Positions 2,618 through 18,463 of a DNA stretch of 64,000 nucleotides are shown piece after piece (positions within the stretch are counted from its first letter, which is position 1; every line of letters starts with the position of its first letter). The stretch is from Kudoa neothunni (lineage: Eukaryota > Animalia > Cnidaria): the NCBI GenBank assembly GCA_964304625.1, contig OZ199840.1, positions 4,738,966-4,802,965 on the forward strand, in the 5' to 3' direction. A program made the position numbers and the translations under genes. Below the pieces are notes generated by a model that saw only the letters and a list, made by a program, of their open reading frames with translations, had not been told where the DNA came from and did not search any database.

Positions 2618-4361
<1,744 letters not shown>

Positions 4362-5330
4362 TTATAGACAATTTTAGATTCTATCAAACAAATTTAATTA
4401 TGGAACTAATTCAGATGTGCAATATTAAGCTTACGTTTTTCCATCATATTCGCAATTTCTTAATCCTATCAAGGAGTTATCTCATCAAATAAAAACGATT
4501 ATAACGAATAAACCTCAAAAAAATTAAGAAGAAATACTAGAAATTATTATGGAGAGTCTCGTAGAAGCTACCTCTCCAAACTGTCTCAGTTATTCAAACC
4601 AAGTTGAATCCTATTTTACATGGTGTTTGAATGTGGAAGAAAACAACAAAGAATTAAAATAATTCATTTCTAAGAAAGTTGCATTTTGACTTTACCCTAT
4701 TGAATTTAGATCTCGAAATACTGTATATTTTTCTCGCTACGATAAAAATATGATTCTAAATCTCTAATTATAATTTTACTGAGCTAATTTCCAATTATAT
4801 TGTGATAAGATTGTTACAACTAAATGATTTATATATATTCTGGTCTGCCAATTAGTTTAGCAAGTCTATCCCAATTGAAAACTCATTCCGGTTAACCATC
4901 CGTAATTTACAATAAATCAGTTGACCCTGATTTAAAGACTAGCATGCAATGAAACAAAGATTTTAACAATTTTTGGAAAAAAGATTTAGGATAATAAAAA
5001 TTTCTGTTTAATAAGTAAATTTTGAATCATTTTTATAAACATGAAAATAAATATATCTAACTTAATTTGATTTTATTTATTCAAAATTAAAATATCTTTA
5101 ATAACAATACGCTTAAAAATTAAGATAATGTTCAATTTAATAATAAACAAAATTAACACACAATGTTATTCGAGAAACTCTCTATGTGGATCGAATTTTA
5201 TTGTGCAATACAAATTTTCTTATAAAAATAACTCCCTAAATATATGTATAAAGCTTATAAACTCACGAGAAATAATAAAATTATGGCAATCATAGAAAAG
5301 TGTGAGATAACCAATGTTGATTGTATATTA

Positions 5331-5497: not shown

Positions 5498-6010
5498 GCA
5501 TTGGTAAGTGGAAAATATATTGCAATATTTTTGGGCAAACTCTAATATGTACAAATTTGACTCGTTAGAAAATTTTAAATTAAGTTATTAACGAAATTAT
5601 TATCTAAAACTGATAGAACTGTTTATATGATTGTATTTGTTGATAATAAATAAAATAGCTCGTAGAGAATTTTGATATAATCGTTAATATTTATAAGGAA
5701 TTTAGATGAGTTAATGTTAACACTTAACACTAGGTAGTTTCAGTGTTTTAAATTAGACTTAATCTTTAAGAATGTTTATTTACTTGGTTTCATGGTAGCA
5801 AACCAAGATATACCAATCTCTTAATTGGATATACTTAAATCACTAAAATCAAGAAATAAATTTTTGAACTAATCGGTTTAAAATAATTTAAAACAAATAG
5901 ATATGGGTATATTAGATGTAGATCAGAATTTTCTGTGTGGAAAAACACTATATTTGTAAGAAGTGACTTTTGTTATGAGATTGTCAATTATGTAACAATG
6001 AAAAAATTTG

Positions 6011-9000
6011 ATGACTGTTGCCAAGGAAAACTTGGTTCCAAAAAAACGATTTCACATTGAAACATCACGGATGGAATTTGTAGAAAACTTTGATTACCAA
6101 CCTTTGAAAAGAACTCGGAACAGAATATCACCCGAAACCAAATGGAGAATAATTTCCGCTTTAAAAGTAACTCAATCAATTTTCTAATATATAGCTACTG
6201 GGTTTAGGTTAAAAGTTATCGTGAGGTAGCAAAGTGTTTTGGACTTCCAGTAAAAACAATACAAACTATTTATCAAATATACAAAGCAAGCAAAGGCAAC
6301 ATAACTCTTCGACGGGATAAACTCGCTCGATCCTATTGCAACATACATCAGCAGGCTTTTCTGAATAGACTTCTTGACGTAGATTGTACCTTGAGTTTGC
6401 GAATGCTGCAGCGAATATTTTACAATAAGTATTCGCAGAAAATAAGTCTACCAACAATTTCGCGCTATGTGGACCATTTTAAATTTAACATAAAATTTTC
6501 AGTTGCCAGAAAAAAATACAGAGGTGACCTTGAATCATTCAACCCGAAGTAAACATGCTTTGATTTACTTTGCGAAAAATTAACTGATTTTGTTAAGATT
6601 ATCCTTTTTGTTTGATCCTTATTTTTCTCCCGAATCGTTTAGCAGCAAGTTAGTTCTTTTTAATGTGGTCCAGATAATTGTTACCACACGTGTCAAATGT
6701 AAATACATCAACCACAAAACCAACAATCAAGAATCGGATGTGTGCTACGAAAACAAAGAGTACAATGTATTGCTGGGTGTGTGCCAAGAGAGGGTGTTAG
6801 CAGCCGTACTTAGAGAGAACATTGGTTTTAATGGTGAGGAAATAATGACCACTATACAGGAGTGTGCTCGAATCTACTTCCCTGACATTATGAAACAAAA
6901 AGTCATTGTTATTGGGCCGGGAATACCCTGGGGGATAAACCACCTCAACGATCTCTATTCTATCACCTATGCGAATTCGGGTGGATACATGAAAAAAGAC
7001 TACGGGAACTATGATTTACGATTTTCTATCGCTAACCATCTCAACAACAACGATTTATTTGCTATCGATGGGTTCTACAACACCATATATTTTATGAAAC
7101 CGATTATCCATCTAATGAATCATGTTGTAAAGCGTATCAAGTGTATTCCTCATTCCAATTTGAATTCAATATCGACCATGATTTCCACCCAAATTAAAAA
7201 CTTGTCCGAAAAACGTCCTAGGAAATATTTCAAAAGTCTCGGGTTCTTTCTCAACATTGTAACATCCGGGTATCAATTGTTTGAGACTGATAAAAAGAAA
7301 AATAAATCACACGGTACATCTTCACAGCTGGAGTCATCGGACGTAAAAGAATTAAGTTCACAACTGACAGACGATACAAGCCACTCGACCCAACTAACTA
7401 AACCACACAAAATCAACTATTGTGAACTTACCATAGATGATATTTCTTCTTCGTTGTCCTCATCAGAATTCAACGAAGAAAACGGACGTCAAACTTACGC
7501 TACCATAACTGAGAATTGCGACCATTTGTTCGCCAATAAGACTGTTTTTGTGAAAAGAAAAAATTCTGTTGATTATGAATCTGCTGAGATTCACAATGAC
7601 GGAATTATCTATAGGAAATTCAAGTACACAAGTGAAAATGACAACTCTACTTCTTCTCTGTCAGTAAATCAAGATGAAAACTTTTCTTCAATCTTGTTGA
7701 ATTCCCAAGTACCTTCGACTGACCACGTTGGGTTGAATAGTTGCTGTGGTTTTACGGTCAATTTCTATAAAATGGAAAAACCTCTACAATCAATATCTAC
7801 AATCCAATTGGTGGATGGTATATCTCTATTCTTGAGAAATTTTAGAAATTATTAAATTTATAATTGACAGATAAACACGTCAGGTGTAATGGCTGCGGAA
7901 AAGCTGTTCCCATCGATACCGAGATCAATTCAGACAACCTTTTATCAACGGCACCTGGTCACGACAATAACTATGGAGATTTGTTTCCTATAAATAAATT
8001 CTACGATCTTATGTTTGACTGCGAACAATATCCAATAGAAAAAGTTAGAGAGATAATAAGTAATACTAAGGCTGAATGTGATAAAAAATTTAAACCGGAC
8101 AGTCCTTTGGTGACTAATATTCAGCACAATTGGATAAATGAGGCACGGCGCAAATTGGCCATTAAAAAGCCCAATCTCCCACCTTCCCAATTTAGACTTT
8201 ATCTACAAAGTTTAATCAAACCACAAAAATCAATAGAAAATTTATTGGAGAAAAAATTGGTGAATTCGCTGTTGGTAGAACCTCCAAGTGAAGGCATTCA
8301 AATAATCACTGTGTTTGGTTGCGATCTAACTAGAAACAGAGCTCAATCATGGAGAGTGGATAAAGACGATCAAAATTGTAAACCAAATATTAACTTAAAT
8401 GATATATGTTTTTTATAATATTTTGTTGGATATAGTTTTTAAACAGGATGATAAAAAATTGGCTAATATAGAGATAAAAGTCAGCCGGATATGCAATGAA
8501 AACGGCACTGATACATCAAACTCATCCTCACTCCCGAAGACAGATCATACTAGCACATCAGAAAACACTGGATTGATAGACTTTGTTTCTGAGCTCAAGA
8601 CAGTTTGTCTGTCACCTGCGGATGTCAACTTGCAACAACATTACAATGTGATACTTTGGGATATTATGAAACAACAACCGTCTCCAGACTATAAGGTTAT
8701 ACCTGGTATCACTGACCAAAACAACCTAAAAATTGCCTCCGCTATCCAAGATCTACAACTTAAGAATGATCGGGAGAAGGAAGATATTCTTAACAACATA
8801 CAAAAATTGCTCCATGAAAATAACATGTTAATCAATCAATATTACCTCTCCAAAAAAGCGGCTAACACAAAATCCGACCCTGACCGTAGCAAAGTTGTTA
8901 ACGATAATAGTAGTATTTTTTATATTTGGCTCTTTGGATGTACTAATTATAAATTATAAGATGGCAAGCTTGACACACTTGATGGTCTTATTGATTCCTT

Positions 9001-9202
9001 CGACTTGAATCATTCTCCAATTGAGGGAGATAACAATACGGAAGGCGAGATGAAATTTGGAGAATTTCTTGATTTTGTTGAAGGTGTAGGCGCAGATATT
9101 GTTGCTGTGGAGTTTAATTCATTTGGCAAAAGAACTTTGAGAAAGGAAATTCCCTCGTATACTAATAATAACAACAAGAATAATAAAGGAAGTCCCGAAT
9201 AA
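6011..9202 (+). CDS. Intron-containing host gene derived from an IS630/Tc1-type transposase: bipartite HTH, degenerate DDE domain and long C-terminal extension, ~979 aa
   Basis: Exons 6011-6166, 6208-6548, 6598-7817, 7871-8377, 8436-8909 and 8961-9202 join with compatible phases through GT-AG introns of 41-58 nt into one uninterrupted frame (2940 nt). N-terminus: KRTRNRISPETKWRIISALK-VKSYREVAKCFGLPVKTIQTIYQIYK...FLNRLLDVDCTLSLRML...ISLPTISRYVDHFKF. Next region aligns by eye to the DDE_3 fold (NKEYNVLLGVCQERVL...GFNGEEIMTTIQE...KVIVIG). Confidence 0.75.
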
Positions 9203-11900
9203 AAACACAAATTTTGAGGTTTAGAATTGGTACCGTGAATGGGTTCCAATTCCCCTTTTCTCAATAAAGCTGGAAGAATGCTTTTATATTCATATATTTC
9301 TTCTCGGAGAAAAAATTGTAATCAGCTCATGGCTTTAAAATAATTCAAATTATTCCATGAACCAAAACAAATCATTTGAAAAAATAATAATGTTACAATT
9401 ACTTTAAATATTACGTTAGAATAATATGATAGAATGACTCTTAGTTTTATTATTTTTAGAGTTTCCTTTTTTTCGCAAAAACTCATACTTCATGACTTTT
9501 TTCCTATAAATACTAAATAATTAAATTTATAAAAAATAATAGAGAAAATTTTAAATATGTAAGCACAATAAAATAAATTTTATAGCTTTGCAATTGAGTT
9601 TGGAATTACATTATATTGATTCCTGTATATGTTTTAATGTGGAGCATTTTTTGGTCTAAATAATATACAGTCAGTCTGTGGTCGGTTTTACGCACCTTTT
9701 AAAAAGTAAAACAATTTGAACGATCAAATGTGCAACCGAAATATAATATTTTTTTGAATATTTTATTATAGAATTTAGATCCAAATAATATGATATGATT
9801 AAGAAATTTCCAGATTGTTAATCACGTGACTGGCGATTTTACGCACTTTTTTGAAAAAATAGATGAATTTTGATTAATGTTCGAATGGATTAAAGGAAAT
9901 AATAAAATACATCCACAATAACTCTCCCAAATTTGCCTAATTTGTTAATATAAAGCACCAGATATATCCTTCATATCCAACTATTGTGGCACTTTAAAAA
10001 AACCAAATAAAATTGTTTATATTATTGAACACGAATCGATTATTGTTGTGAGATGCGAATTAATAAAAATGAGTTTTTTTTAAATAGCTACGTATATTAG
10101 TACATGCACGCGCAACCAAATGTATAAAACTAGACGTTACCAATTGCACACACATTTTTCCACGATCCTGGAGGGATCACTCAAAACCTATTAAAGACCG
10201 TGCGTTTATTTAAAAAATATAAAATTTTTTATTAGTTTTTGCGTATTTAATTATGTTATTAATAAATAATTGAATAATTTTTATATTATGCGCGCGCATT
10301 GACATCGTTCCCTGACTTTATTCAGATAAAGAACCTGAATATATTATTTAGAAATTCTAAAATTAATTATGGAGTATAATCTATTTATAACTCCAATTAT
10401 TTTATTTGGAATATATGTACAAAATGAATTATTGTAATAAATAAAATACAGATTGTTATGCATTTATTGAAGTCACAAATGTGTAGTTTTAATAATCAGG
10501 AAATGAATGTTCGTTATCACAGAAATAATATCAGAATAAATTTAAAATTATTAAAAATATGAAGAAATGTTTGTTATTATTTTTGTGTAAAAATAAATTT
10601 GGTATTAAATAAATATTAATTGGAATTAATTAAAAGTTACTCTAATTAAACTAGTGTGTAACACTGAAAATAAAAAATCATTAATAAGGTTTAACTTGGA
10701 TATGACATAATTTTTTTTGCAATGAAAAGAAAAATGTAATAAAAAGAACTTGAGAAATACAGTATTTCAACATCAACTTGCAATGGACCGGCACATGTAT
10801 TAAAATAAAATGTCTGGCGCTATACTTGAGTGAGATTAAAAATTCCAACTATTTTGACGATGATTTATCAAAAAATATTATTATTATTATTCAATATAAA
10901 GAATACGAAAGCAGCTATTATACAATTTTGTCATGTTAGATATGTGCTCGCGATCTCGTAAATGTTAGGTAATCGGGGAGGGTGTAACACCTGAAAATCA
11001 CTACCTTGTGCATATTTTTTCTTGCTCATTTTTTTACGATTGATTATAATAAAATTAATGAACACCGAAAGCAAAGACACAGCCGAAAAAAACATTTCTA
11101 AGATTTAACAATTCTTCACCCGAACATAGTCAGTAAACGTGCAATCCCCAACTTGATACAATAAACATTGTGTGATATCTTCTTCTTCCTACTTCTAAAT
11201 TCTAAACTTATTTATTATCATTAATTATATTTTTTTCCTATTTAAATATAACAACGTTAAATGGATAAATTTTAAAAATAGGTTTCTCGCATATTTCACA
11301 AAAACATACTATTTTTGATTTTACAAAAATGTTATTTTAACTCTTAACCACAATATTTATGTTTATTGATGCTATTTTTAGTTTTTAAATTTTTTATGGT
11401 ATTTTTATATATACGCAAGAGGGTTATACGTGGATTTTCATGAAAATTTATTATCCAGCAAATTATATATGCTAAAATGAACGATTCAAAGAGTTCAATA
11501 TATTACAAGACATAATAAATAAATAAATAAATTTTTTTACAAATAATATGTAGAAAGCTGTTGATATAACAAATAGTTTCTCTTAAATAAAAGTAGGAGT
11601 AACAATTAAATATTGGTATAAATGTCTACAAAGATTGTTATGTATTTGCTTGATTTTATATGCTGACTATATTCAAAAATATTTATTATTAAAATTCTAG
11701 AACTACCAGGTAATAGTATAGATTTCCTATGCTATAAAAATTGCATTATTTCAACTAAAATTATAAAACCGGTGACAATAATTATATAACTTTAAAAGGC
11801 GTTATTGTTTGATTTATATATCAGTTTCATAGTTGTAAAGTTCTTATAAATAAATCTTTTATGAAATAAGATTTTTATCTACTATATCTACTTTATATAC

Positions 11901-15392: not shown

Positions 15393-18300
15393 CTAAATTC
15401 CAATTCGGATGATAAATGTGAGAACAAATATCACCAAAACTATTCCTCCAATGGTTGACATCGCAATGGTGGCTCTTCTGTATCTGTAATAGTTGGCGGA
15501 ATTTGGCTTCCTAAAAGATTAAGATATTAAAATCTAACGATAATTTTTTTATTATAATTACAGGCAAAACAACTCATCCAAAACCCAAACTGGATTTTCA
15601 TAGTTTTTACAGTTATGACTAGCGTAGTCGTAAGACATACAAAAGGTGCCGTTGCCTATGTAGTTAGGGGCACACAAACAATCGTAATAACCCATTGAAT
15701 TTAAACATATGGCGTTGCTATCACACACGTTTGTTGTTTCACATTCATTTACATCTTAAATTCAATGTAACTATATTTAAAAACTAATATGTTTCTTTAC
15801 CTTTGATGGAGGTTATGTTCACCACAACTAACAGGACATTTGAACTGAATGAATAATTTGCTTCAATCGACAAGTTCGCACTATTTATCAAACTTTCCCA
15901 GGTGTTCAGAACAAGCTCGCTCATGTCATGGAATTTATATTCTGTGTATATTTTGTTCGCACTAATAATTTATTATAACATATAAGGAGAATATTTATTT
16001 ATGTATTACTCTATCAGAGTGGATTCGATTGAAATAAGTGAGGTGAAACTTGAGAACAGGGGATCCAACTATTATTCAATTAATTTATTTATTTGTATCA
16101 AATTATTTTTACCATATCTTTAAAATTATCTAACACTTCTGGAACACCTATTTATTAAAGTATAATTTATAATCTTAGTTAATATAACAATTACTTGTAT
16201 TCTGGGGAAGTATCGTATAATTTTCACCAGTTATGGTGTTAACTAACTGTATCGTCCATTCTTGATAAAATCTCGAAAACACTATGAAATATTGCGTATT
16301 TTAAAGTCATGTAATTAGTAAATCATACGCGTGCAAATTCCATATAGTTCCTCAACATTTGGTCTTATCAAACACTCGCATGATACATTGCTTGTTGCGC
16401 CCACTGGATAAGATATATTTGCAAAACATGAATCAGAATCTTATTTATTCATTAGTTCACATAATTAAATATATTACGGAATTACCTATGTTAGTAATAA
16501 CTTGGGTTACATTGAGAGGGAAGTCCGAATCCTGAATTAACAGCATTTTAGCTATGTAATTTTCGGTAACTGTTGGATTATATTCGTTAGTCGCAACATA
16601 TATCGTCAAATTGATCACAGTAGATCCGTTTCTATTCAAAAATTAAATTTAAATTTTCGTTAATAGATATTTGTTACGTTAATTCATTCACTCTTGAACA
16701 GATTGATGTGAATGAACCATCAAATATTTTGATAATCTAGTAGTTATAGGTTATTCAATATTTATAATTTTTTAAATTTACATAAGAATTGACTCTTTCC
16801 ACAAAGTCCGTAGTCATGGAGTCTGATATGTTATCATAATTAGTATTATATTGGTTAAATGTTGATAACAAGTAATTAATGGACTCGTATTCTAATAAAA
16901 ATTAACAGAAAGAATTTGTATGGAGTTTATTACTTGGTGTAGCGCAAGAAGTGTCTGATATAATTGTGTTACAAGTACATCGGCCCGGATCCGTAGTACA
17001 GTCGGGTTCTGGGTTGCAATCTACATTTATAATATTAAAACAATAAAACACGCATATTTATATTACCTATGGTTGTCACGGATGAAGATGTTGTTGTAGA
17101 ACTTGAGGTGCTCAACGAGCTCGACGAAGTTGTTGAACTAATCAAAGACGACGAGGAAATAGAACTTGATGCAACTGACGAGGAGGATGAGCTTGAAACA
17201 ACTGAACTGGAAGTTGAGCTAGATTGAGAGGAAGTAGGGCTTGTTGAAGTAGAAGGAGATGATGTTGAGCTTGTAACTGAACTTGAACTAGTCAAAACAG
17301 ATGATGACGTTGAGCTTAATGAACTAGATGGGGATGAAGTTGAGCTTAATGAACTAGATGGGGATGAAGTTGAGCTTAATGAACTAGATGGGGATGAAGT
17401 TGAGCTTAATGAACTAGATGGGGATGAAGTTGAGCTTAATGAACTAGATGGGGATGAAGTGGAACTTATTGAAGTAGATGGAGAAGAAGTAGAGGTGGTA
17501 GAAATAGATGATGTAGAGCTTGATGAACTAGATGGAGAGGAGGTGGAACTTATTGAAGTAGATGGAGAAGAAGTAGAGGTGGTAGAAAGAGATGTTGTAG
17601 AGCTTGATGAACTAGATGGAGAGGAGGTGGAACTTATTGAAGTAGATGGAGAAGAAGTAGAGGTGGTAGAAATAGATGATGTAGAGCTTGATGAACTAGA
17701 TGGAGAGGAAGTGGAACTTATTGAAGTAGATGGAGAAGAAGTAGAGGTGGTAGAAAGAGATGTTGTAGAGCTTGATGAGCTAGAAGAAGAGGAGGTGGAG
17801 CTTATTGAAGTAGAAGTAGAGGAACTAGAGGTGGTAGAAATAGATGATGTAGAGCTTGTTGTGACTGAACTTGAACTTGATGAAGTAGAAGGTGTCGAGC
17901 TTGATGTGACGGAACTGGATGAAGTAACAGAACTTGAACTAATAGATGAACTAGTAATGATAGAAGTGGAGCTTGAAATTAGCGAACTGGAACTAATGGA
18001 AGAACTGGTGGAAGAAACACTAGTGAGGGAGCTAGTTGATGGGATAGATGAGCTCGACGATACTGAACTAAGTGTTGAACTTGTTATAGAGGTGAATGCC
18101 TCAATAGGCATGAAAAACAATCCAGGAAAAACTCCTAGCAAAAGTGTGGATGTACCAAAAGAAAATTTTTCTTTGATTATGCTCAATAATGTTAAACAGA
18201 TAAGGTTGACGAAAATCCAAATTAACTCTGTATGTACTGCCCTCTCTCGCTCAAGAGGTTCAAAATTGAACACCGGCTTGATTGATGAGACTGCTATCAA

Positions 18301-18463
18301 TACTGTGCAGAAAAGAACTAAAATTATTTTATTTAGTTGATAAATATTTAAAATTATTTATTTTTTAATTTATTTAAAATAATAAGTTTATAACAATACT
18401 AATCTAGTAATAGACAATTAAAGCAAAAAGGATCTTACTTTTACAAAGTCCTGAGAGATACAT
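15393..18463 (-). CDS. Transmembrane mucin-like protein M1: signal peptide, ~350-aa Ser/Thr tract, Cys knot, SEA, Cys segment, SEA-like, Ca-EGF, TM
   Basis: MYLSGLCK|ILFCTVLIAVSS signal; S/T repeat ORF 17035-18300; SEA with NGSTVINLTIYV (GS cleavage-type motif); DVNECETTNVCDSNAICLNSMGYYDCLCAPNYIGNGTFC; TM exon KPNSANYYRYRRATIAMSTIGGIVLVIFVLTFIIRIGI*. The 5' exon structure is less certain. Confidence 0.85.
17310..17850 (-). repeat. Coding tandem repeats in the mucin tract: 30-bp unit (SSPSSSLSST) x5 plus alternating ~84/87-bp units
   Basis: TGAGCTTAATGAACTAGATGGGGATGAAGT is repeated, followed by longer units starting GTGGAACTTATTGAAGTAGATGGAGAAG. Confidence 0.9.

Follow-up and report, generated by a model that had tools for sequence, protein, structure and literature searches.

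Domesticated transposases are well known. CENP-B, Jerky, TIGD, POGZ, and the fission-yeast Abp1/Cbh proteins are derived from pogo, bind DNA in a sequence-specific manner without cutting it, and often form small paralog families. Human SETMAR (Metnase) joins an Hsmar1 transposase domain to a SET domain. It has retained two acidic residues of the triad (DDN) along with residual nuclease activity, and the function of its added domain, which is N-terminal, is known. The PgmL proteins of Paramecium are inactive PiggyMac-like paralogs, which lost catalytic residues and yet have been retained. To my knowledge, full-length derivatives of the Tc1 branch having both a DNA-binding domain and a dead core are uncommon. 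A candidate for such a protein is described here. It is encoded by a predicted six-exon gene at positions 6011-9202 (+ strand) of a 64,000-nucleotide stretch of the Kudoa neothunni genome (contig OZ199840.1 of assembly GCA_964304625.1). This whole stretch is called the window below.

How does this gene compare with the described systems? Like SETMAR, it combines a DNA-binding domain and a domain of catalytic fold in what may be a larger multi-exon host gene. Unlike in SETMAR, none of the three catalytic positions seems to be acidic, and an orphan sequence has been added at the C-terminus. The pogo-derived proteins belong to the pogo/Tigger group with a DDE_1 core and a CENP-B-type helix-turn-helix (HTH) and are widely conserved, whereas the Kudoa gene probably comes from the Tc1 branch and has no homolog in the libraries searched. 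PgmL belongs to the piggyBac superfamily and acts in programmed DNA elimination together with a domesticated partner that is catalytically active; the Kudoa gene is not known to have a partner or process of this kind. A further system for comparison resides in the Kudoa genome itself. It is an intron-bearing family of Tc1 elements (loci L003, L004, L009, and L012) of the IS630-Tc1-mariner group, characterized by DDE_3 with HTH_SB / HTH_Tnp_Tc3_2. In both the gene and this family, a bipartite paired-like HTH precedes an RNase H-like core, the linker measures about 45 residues, two introns agree in position and phase, and helix 1 is preceded by a basic KR-rich motif. In contrast to the Tc1 family, the gene has N/G/I instead of the DD34E triad, does not match the DDE_3 profile, and has a core diverged beyond recognition. 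It also lacks terminal inverted repeats (TIRs) and TA-flanked ends, is present in a single copy, and has a tail of about 600 residues.

The gene is read here as a host gene derived from a Tc1-type transposase, one of five old paralogs in a genome that also holds elements resembling their ancestor. This combined reading seems somewhat probable. A preliminary description, made from the sequence alone, had proposed a domesticated and catalytically dead transposase at this locus. The four paralogs, the inheritance of introns 1 and 2, and the restriction of the tail to this copy are new.

Relationship to Tc1 transposases

Homology searches and folding of the predicted protein were done exon by exon. 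In Pfam, the best match of exon 2 was HTH_SB, the HTH family of Sleeping Beauty, which was weak (E-value 2.4e-4) and below the family cut-off. When the HTH blocks of the gene and its four paralogs (see below) were compared with eight local Tc1 transposases by hhalign, the probability was 95.6%, with an E-value of 1.3e-8 and a score of 60.9 over 98 columns. The aligned region runs from the end of the first HTH (HTH1) through the second HTH (HTH2) into the first part of the linker. As controls, the maximum of 60 column shuffles was 22.6, and the reversed template scored 13.7. The exon-2 blocks, compared with exon 2 of the intron-bearing Tc1 family, gave a probability of 93% and an E-value of 3e-7, with column 2 placed against column 2. 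In the profile alignments, the HTH regions of the two families are about 14-18% identical. BLASTP of exon 2 against an intact local transposase gave a collinear weak match (E-value 0.022). Since exon 1 alone was uninformative in hhalign at its length (two Tc1 profiles), an exon-end-anchored score test was used for it instead. The linker from HTH2 to the position of the first catalytic aspartate (D1) is 46 residues in the gene and 45 residues in the intron-bearing Tc1 family. Judged from these alignments, the head of the predicted protein is a homolog of the Tc1 paired-like domain. The PKKR motif and the two HTH-like blocks that had been noticed in the 5′ exons were located in exons 1 and 2.

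The core in exon 3 is hardly visible to sequence comparison. It was found that phmmer with exon 3 gave 0 matches against 1.84 billion representative proteins, while a profile of the five paralogous cores gave 0 matches against a 5.8-billion protein library and only noise against the PDB sequences. The DDE_3 family of Pfam matched none of the five paralogs, even at an E-value of 10. Over the six exon pieces and the paralog cores, Pfam gave nothing beyond the sub-threshold HTH_SB match and sub-threshold noise in exon 5. BLASTP of the core against the intact local transposase found no match, and feature searches of the ESM Atlas with the core and with exon 4 gave no usable match. In hhalign, the cores were compared with the Tc1 cores using three Tc1 profiles; the probability was 0.4-6%, which is not significant, and the register was identical each time.

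An AlphaFold model of the core was made from the alignment of the five sequences, with no Tc1 sequence in the input. Its predicted local distance difference test (pLDDT) score was 64.3, and its predicted template modeling score was 0.66; the strand-rich half of the core reached a pLDDT of about 80-88. With a two-sequence alignment, the pLDDT was 41.8, which was too poor for a structure search. In a Foldseek search of the PDB, ranks 1-16 were occupied by the catalytic domains of Mos1, SETMAR/Metnase, and Sleeping Beauty (E-value 4e-4 to 4e-3, probability 0.99-1.0, template modeling (TM) score 0.42-0.54), and the matches at lower ranks included other DDE transposases (Tn7 TnsB and the P element) and retroviral integrases. 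VIA-align gave a Z score of 10.2 for Metnase (154 residues aligned, root-mean-square deviation 3.5), 9.9 for Mos1 (177 residues aligned), and 10-11 for integrase cores (120-138 residues aligned). The closest ESM Atlas clusters to the core model were DDE_3 (TM score 0.53-0.56). The core is thus predicted to keep a Tc1/mariner-type RNase H-like fold, at the fold level only. Head and core together make up a Tc1/mariner architecture, and it is very likely that the gene descends from Tc1. The IS630-Tc1-mariner architecture in the preliminary description is therefore supported by the homology of the head in hhalign and by the core fold in AlphaFold, Foldseek, and VIA-align. Matches to both an HTH and DDE_3 had also been expected. 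An HTH profile match and DDE-type fold neighbors were indeed obtained, but the DDE_3 sequence profile stayed unmatched.

Which residues stand at the catalytic positions? The local Tc1 enzymes are of the DD34E type (D189, D272, and E307 in the intronless transposase L010). Three greedy profile alignments of low probability gave one collinear register, in which N22 corresponds to D1, G106 to the second aspartate (D2), and I170 to the glutamate (E). This register agrees with strands beta1 and beta4 and with helix 167-179 of the model. I170 (7106-7108) lies at the start of that helix, after strand beta5 (154-156), and in three separate hhalign comparisons the P of PIIHLMN was paired with the P of the Tc1 motif NPIE. 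The four paralogs have N, N, N, and G at the D1 position. No other block of the family is as strongly conserved as the motif GP[GN]I[PL][WC] at D2, whose G, P, and I are invariant across the five paralogs. In the gene, no acidic residue was found at the three mapped sites or within one to two residues of them, and none of residues 168-176 is acidic in any register. The assignments of N to D1 (6662) and G to D2 (6914), which had been made by eye, are upheld together with their coordinates by the profile alignments and the model. The preliminary description had also taken the D at 7067 (D157) as the equivalent of E, whereas the profiles place E at I170. D157 is not likely to be this equivalent, because it lies directly after beta5 and is replaced by S, S, A, and C in the paralogs. 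On these alignments, it is quite likely that the protein does not perform DDE catalysis.

The genome is rich in Tc1 elements, with at least 150 scored DDE_3 matches among 436 candidates. Intact intronless transposases of 322-366 residues are present in several families (e.g., L010, L022, L023, L024, and L029). The intron-bearing family has three exons, an intact triad (IDESGF / MDNVxFH / NPIEE), and TIRs. Its elements are abundant, about 1.3-1.6 kb in length, and bounded by 26-56-nt TIRs beginning with TACAGT, and the family looks still active in the genome. In L009, intron 1 (1028-1066; 39 nt, phase 0) lies between helices 1 and 2 of HTH1, and intron 2 (1420-1457; 38 nt, phase 2) interrupts the linker, with D1 following after 19 residues. 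Introns 1 and 2 of the gene have the same positions and phases as those of L009, with intron 2 about 20 residues before D1. In the score test mentioned above, the final 20 residues encoded by exon 1 were anchored to the end of the exon and scored 15.0 against the four Tc1 exon-1 ends (shuffle p 3.5e-4); no other 20-mer of the target protein reached this score (0/829). By eye, the paralog L017 also appears to have both introns at corresponding places. Since positions and phases are shared, introns 1 and 2 seem to have been inherited from an intron-bearing transposon and not gained after domestication. It is likely, as far as the sequences tell, that the intron-bearing Tc1 family or a close relative was the ancestor of the gene. 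On the other hand, introns are no argument for host-gene status in this genome, because a multi-copy, TIR-bearing Tc1 family has introns at the same position and phase. Their earlier use as evidence of domestication has to be given up.

Gene model, paralogs, and transposon ends

The locus is predicted to consist of six exons and five in-phase GT-AG introns, with 979 or 980 codons (2937 or 2940 nt) without a stop. The underlying stop-free blocks on the + strand are 6002-6184, 6208-6549, 6584-7852, 7864-8415, 8399-8956, and 8960-9199. All frame-keeping GT/GC..AG pairs of 30-150 nt were enumerated for each junction, and each junction was found to have a single short in-phase intron with a GTA-type donor (41-58 nt). 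The GC content is 0.353-0.371 in the six exons, 0.17-0.29 in the five introns, and 0.25-0.27 in the flanks; it is nearly uniform over the exons and drops sharply only within the introns. Exon 1 starts with the first in-frame ATG after a TGA at 5999-6001. Block 4 begins 11 nt past the close of the exon-3 frame, and its first 50 or so codons include no ATG. For this reason, a single gene is the economical reading, and one six-exon gene is predicted as probable. The intact frame of about 979 amino acids in six exons, as first described, is borne out by the stop-free blocks and the five introns. An ATG also exists upstream at 5998. It opens a 20-codon frame (5998-6060, +), which overlaps the start codon at 6011 in another frame and may be an upstream open reading frame.

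To find paralogs, exon 3 was used as the first query against the genome, followed by a profile that was extended step by step. I found four divergent paralogs (Table 1) and no further ones in the genome. They are about 20-25% identical to the target protein, the nearest one being 25% identical. In each, an HTH block is followed by a core block in open frames of about 180-420 codons, and the frames close shortly after the core without downstream open blocks. The domain order, the intron positions, and the invariant motifs are kept in all five paralogs. At the DNA level, the 3.8-kb target locus matched only itself in the 40-Mb genome. The expectation of a single copy is thus correct for DNA matches, but the gene is not unique, being one of five divergent paralogs. 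In L018, stop codons are found in the N-terminal part of the core; this paralog may be decaying or a pseudogene, or it may have extra introns.

The tail begins at approximately residue 215 of exon 3, comprises about 600 residues, and makes up the rest of the protein. It is specific to the target copy, because the paralogs end shortly after the core. No match to the tail was found in Pfam or, for exon 4, in the ESM Atlas, and the genome contains no paralog of exon 4 or of exon 5. Judged by eye, the tail is of low complexity and rich in Ser, Asn, and Thr; part of exon 5 resembles a coiled coil, and a segment of exon 6 is acidic.

No TIRs were found around the target and its paralogs; only AT-rich pairs at chance level were seen. 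As a positive control, the same tool revealed TIRs of 48-56 nt on real Tc1 copies, which begin with TACAGT and are 92-93% complementary. This agrees with the absence of TIRs reported earlier. A search of the window with TIR 15-mers gave 3 occurrences against 3.6 expected, which is at chance level. An inverted pair at 5735/10651 with CAGTG was considered as a TIR relic and rejected, as it is at chance level among 18 similar AT-rich pairs. Two TIR-like ends lie near the gene, at 4725 and 10758, and both point away from it. The former belongs to a truncated and frameshifted fragment at 4361-4725 (+), which was matched by tblastn to residues 100-195, in the 3′ portion of the DDE exon, of the intron-bearing Tc1 family and includes the right TIR of that family (4666-4725). 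The fragment precedes the gene by 1.3 kb and has the same orientation. The latter (10758-10783, +) faces outward and matches the Tc1 TIR start (TACAGTATTTCAACA...) in part, over about 26 nt; it may be the left end of another decayed element or a chance match. It had been stated that every true transposon in the window is riddled with stops; this statement was not confirmed, as Tc1 queries gave the truncated and frameshifted fragment only.

Table 1. Features of the target gene in the window, its paralogs on contigs C2 and C3, and copies of the intron-bearing Tc1 family
Feature	Sequence	Position	Strand	Remarks
Exon 1	window	6011..6166	+	52 codons, ends in phase 0; PKKR and KRTRNR basic motifs, helix 1 of first HTH
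Intron 1	window	6167..6207	+	41 nt, GTAACT..TTTAG, phase 0, GC 0.29
Exon 2	window	6208..6548	+	remainder of HTH1, HTH2, start of linker; predicted Tc1-type paired-like DNA-binding domain
Intron 2	window	6549..6597	+	49 nt, GTAAAC..GTTAAG, phase 2
Exon 3	window	6598..7817	+	predicted RNase H-like dead core at ~6641-7243, then Ser/Asn/Thr-rich tail without any match
Asn at D1 position (N22)	window	6662..6664	+	strand beta1 (18-38 in model); aligned to D of Tc1 'DE' motif
GPGIPW motif	window	6914..6931	+	stands for Tc1 'DNAxxH'; G106 at D2, directly after strand beta4 (102-105)
D157	window	7067..7069	+	directly after strand beta5; probably not the catalytic equivalent
PIIHLMN	window	7100..7120	+	start of helix 167-179, equivalent of Tc1 third-residue helix (NPIE)
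Intron 3	window	7818..7870	+	53 nt, GTATAT..GACAG, phase 1, GC 0.19
Exon 4	window	7871..8377	+	169 codons, orphan; inside a 184-codon stop-free block
Intron 4	window	8378..8435	+	58 nt, GTAAAC..ATATAG, phase 1, GC 0.17
Exon 5	window	8436..8912	+	orphan; alternative donor at 8910 gives 979 rather than 980 residues
Intron 5	window	8913..8960	+	48 nt (51 nt from 8910), GC 0.21, TACTAAT branch-like motif; takes out in-frame TAA at 8957
Exon 6	window	8961..9202	+	acidic stretch, then Asn/Lys-rich end; TAA stop at 9200
AATAAA	window	9263..9268	+	61 nt past stop codon; likely polyadenylation signal
Paralog L002	C3	9.547 Mb
Paralogs L017, L018	C2	6.773 and 6.766 Mb		tandem, 6.5 kb apart, same orientation, 35-48% identical
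Paralog L019	C2	9.433 Mb
Intron-bearing Tc1 copy	L009	893-2505
Intron-bearing Tc1 copy	L003	1311-2855
Intron-bearing Tc1 copy	L004	1250-2567

The assembly of 40.26 Mb consists of four contigs (17.2, 12.0, and 11.0 Mb plus 18.2 kb), and the window corresponds to C3:4738966-4802965. The window is AT-rich, with a GC content of about 28%, and the gene structures analyzed in this genome have GT-AG introns of 38-58 nt. The smallest contig, C4 (18,219 bp), has 43% GC, long frames only if TGA is read as sense, and a very divergent cytochrome-b-like frame. Neither a tRNA (ARAGORN) nor an Rfam family was found in its first 10 kb. C4 is probably a fast-evolving mitochondrial genome. At 16000-18340 of the window, there are open frames of 421 residues (-) and 293 residues (+) with a GC skew of 0.37, and the minus frame has no Pfam match. 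This region is probably a repeat or a compositionally biased coding region.

Host gene or alternatives

The gene has the hallmarks of domestication, namely a transposase-derived coding sequence without TIRs or similar copies and 980 open codons. It is rather probable that it is a maintained host gene. Several points weigh against the reading as a Tc1-derived host gene with a dead core. RNA reads mapped to 5500-9700 were zero in three runs bearing the same species label, in which the presence of the organism was not shown. No homolog exists outside the genome in the 1.84 billion representatives (exon 3) or the 5.8-billion library (core profile). The core scored 25.2 in hhalign against a maximum of 23.4 in 60 shuffles and has no significant DDE_3 sequence match. 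The residue-level mapping rests on low-confidence alignments and on a model of medium confidence (pLDDT 64). DNA binding, its targets, and a repressor role are pure inference. It was also observed that the four paralogs have acidic clusters near the former site (WEKE/WLDED/WLNED/CNDSD after GP[GN]IPW; EEI in beta5), which are absent in the target.

Are the six exons really one gene? If two genes were present or the model were mis-joined, the Tc1-derived gene would end in or soon after exon 3, and blocks 4-6 would be a separate gene or alternative exons. The four paralogs, which stop shortly after the core, would fit this, as would the lack of paralogs or homologs of exons 4 and 5, and no RNA read joins exons 4-6 to exon 3, the runs having zero reads. 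However, this alternative is improbable in view of the close start of block 4 after the exon-3 frame without an early ATG, the in-phase 48-58-nt GTA..AG intron at every junction, and the GC content of the six exons, which are alike (0.35-0.37) with dips only in introns. Moreover, the sole AATAAA past the stop follows exon 6 (9263), in a search that did not cover the gene interior. The whole locus could instead be a silent relic, that is, an immobilized old Tc1 copy or an unexpressed pseudogene whose open frames have no function. A relic would fit the lack of an ortholog outside the genome in the protein libraries, the stops in the core region of L018, and a genome full of Tc1 copies, as well as the zero reads in the RNA runs, in which the presence of the organism was not shown. 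Nevertheless, about 7% of codons are estimated to be stops at this composition, and neither a 406-codon exon nor 980 codons would be open by chance. Furthermore, the domain order, the intron positions, and the invariant motifs are kept at about 20-25% identity, unlike in neutral decay; open frames kept at such an identity suggest selection for coding capacity rather than youth. A silent relic is therefore quite improbable.

It may also be asked whether the protein is still active, with other residues serving a non-canonical nuclease or transposase. The RNase H-like fold seems to be kept, and the paralogs have the acidic clusters near the former site, but the three mapped sites of the target have no acidic residue nearby in any register examined, and the locus is single copy, without TIRs or recent copies; this possibility is hardly credible. 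A dedicated inhibitor of the transposition of the related Tc1 family, which would poison multimers or compete for TIRs, is a sub-case of the host-gene explanation. In its favor, copies of the ancestor-like Tc1 family are abundant and some of them are intact, a fragment of this family is found 1.3 kb upstream, and the target seems to have kept the DNA-binding domain while losing catalysis. Yet an HTH only about 14-18% identical to that of the Tc1 family makes a shared DNA specificity doubtful, and simple competition needs no long unique tail. A dedicated inhibitor seems unlikely, though conceivable.

Possible function and significance

If the gene is a Tc1-derived host gene, its protein would be unable to cut DNA and may have been retained by selection as a DNA-binding protein, with DNA recognized via the paired-like HTH pair. 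The dead core might serve as a scaffold for dimerization or DNA clamping, and the tail, in the target copy only, might recruit partners. The targets would most likely be sequences resembling Tc1 ends, which are dispersed in hundreds of copies; such ends may be marked, repressed, or used as regulatory sites. Binding to Tc1-end-like DNA is itself only a tentative proposal, because of the divergence of the HTH. It is a rather speculative idea that the five-gene family represents a new non-catalytic use of the Tc1 core, in which the GP[GN]IPW loop would have a function of its own, for instance as a surface for protein or DNA contact, and the proteins would act on the ancestral Tc1 ends.

The likely ancestral element, with the same introns and intact TIR-bearing copies, coexists with the putative host-gene descendants, and the two can be compared directly. 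This comparison could show which residues have changed, how the active-site loop was replaced, and whether the descendants recognize the element ends. For the annotation of this genome, the results are a warning: host genes and transposons cannot be told apart by introns, and neither Pfam nor searches of billions of protein sequences reveal the family. If the new non-catalytic use of the core is true, the Tc1 family and the five genes would be a natural 'before and after' pair for the transition from a transposase to a host regulator or repressor.

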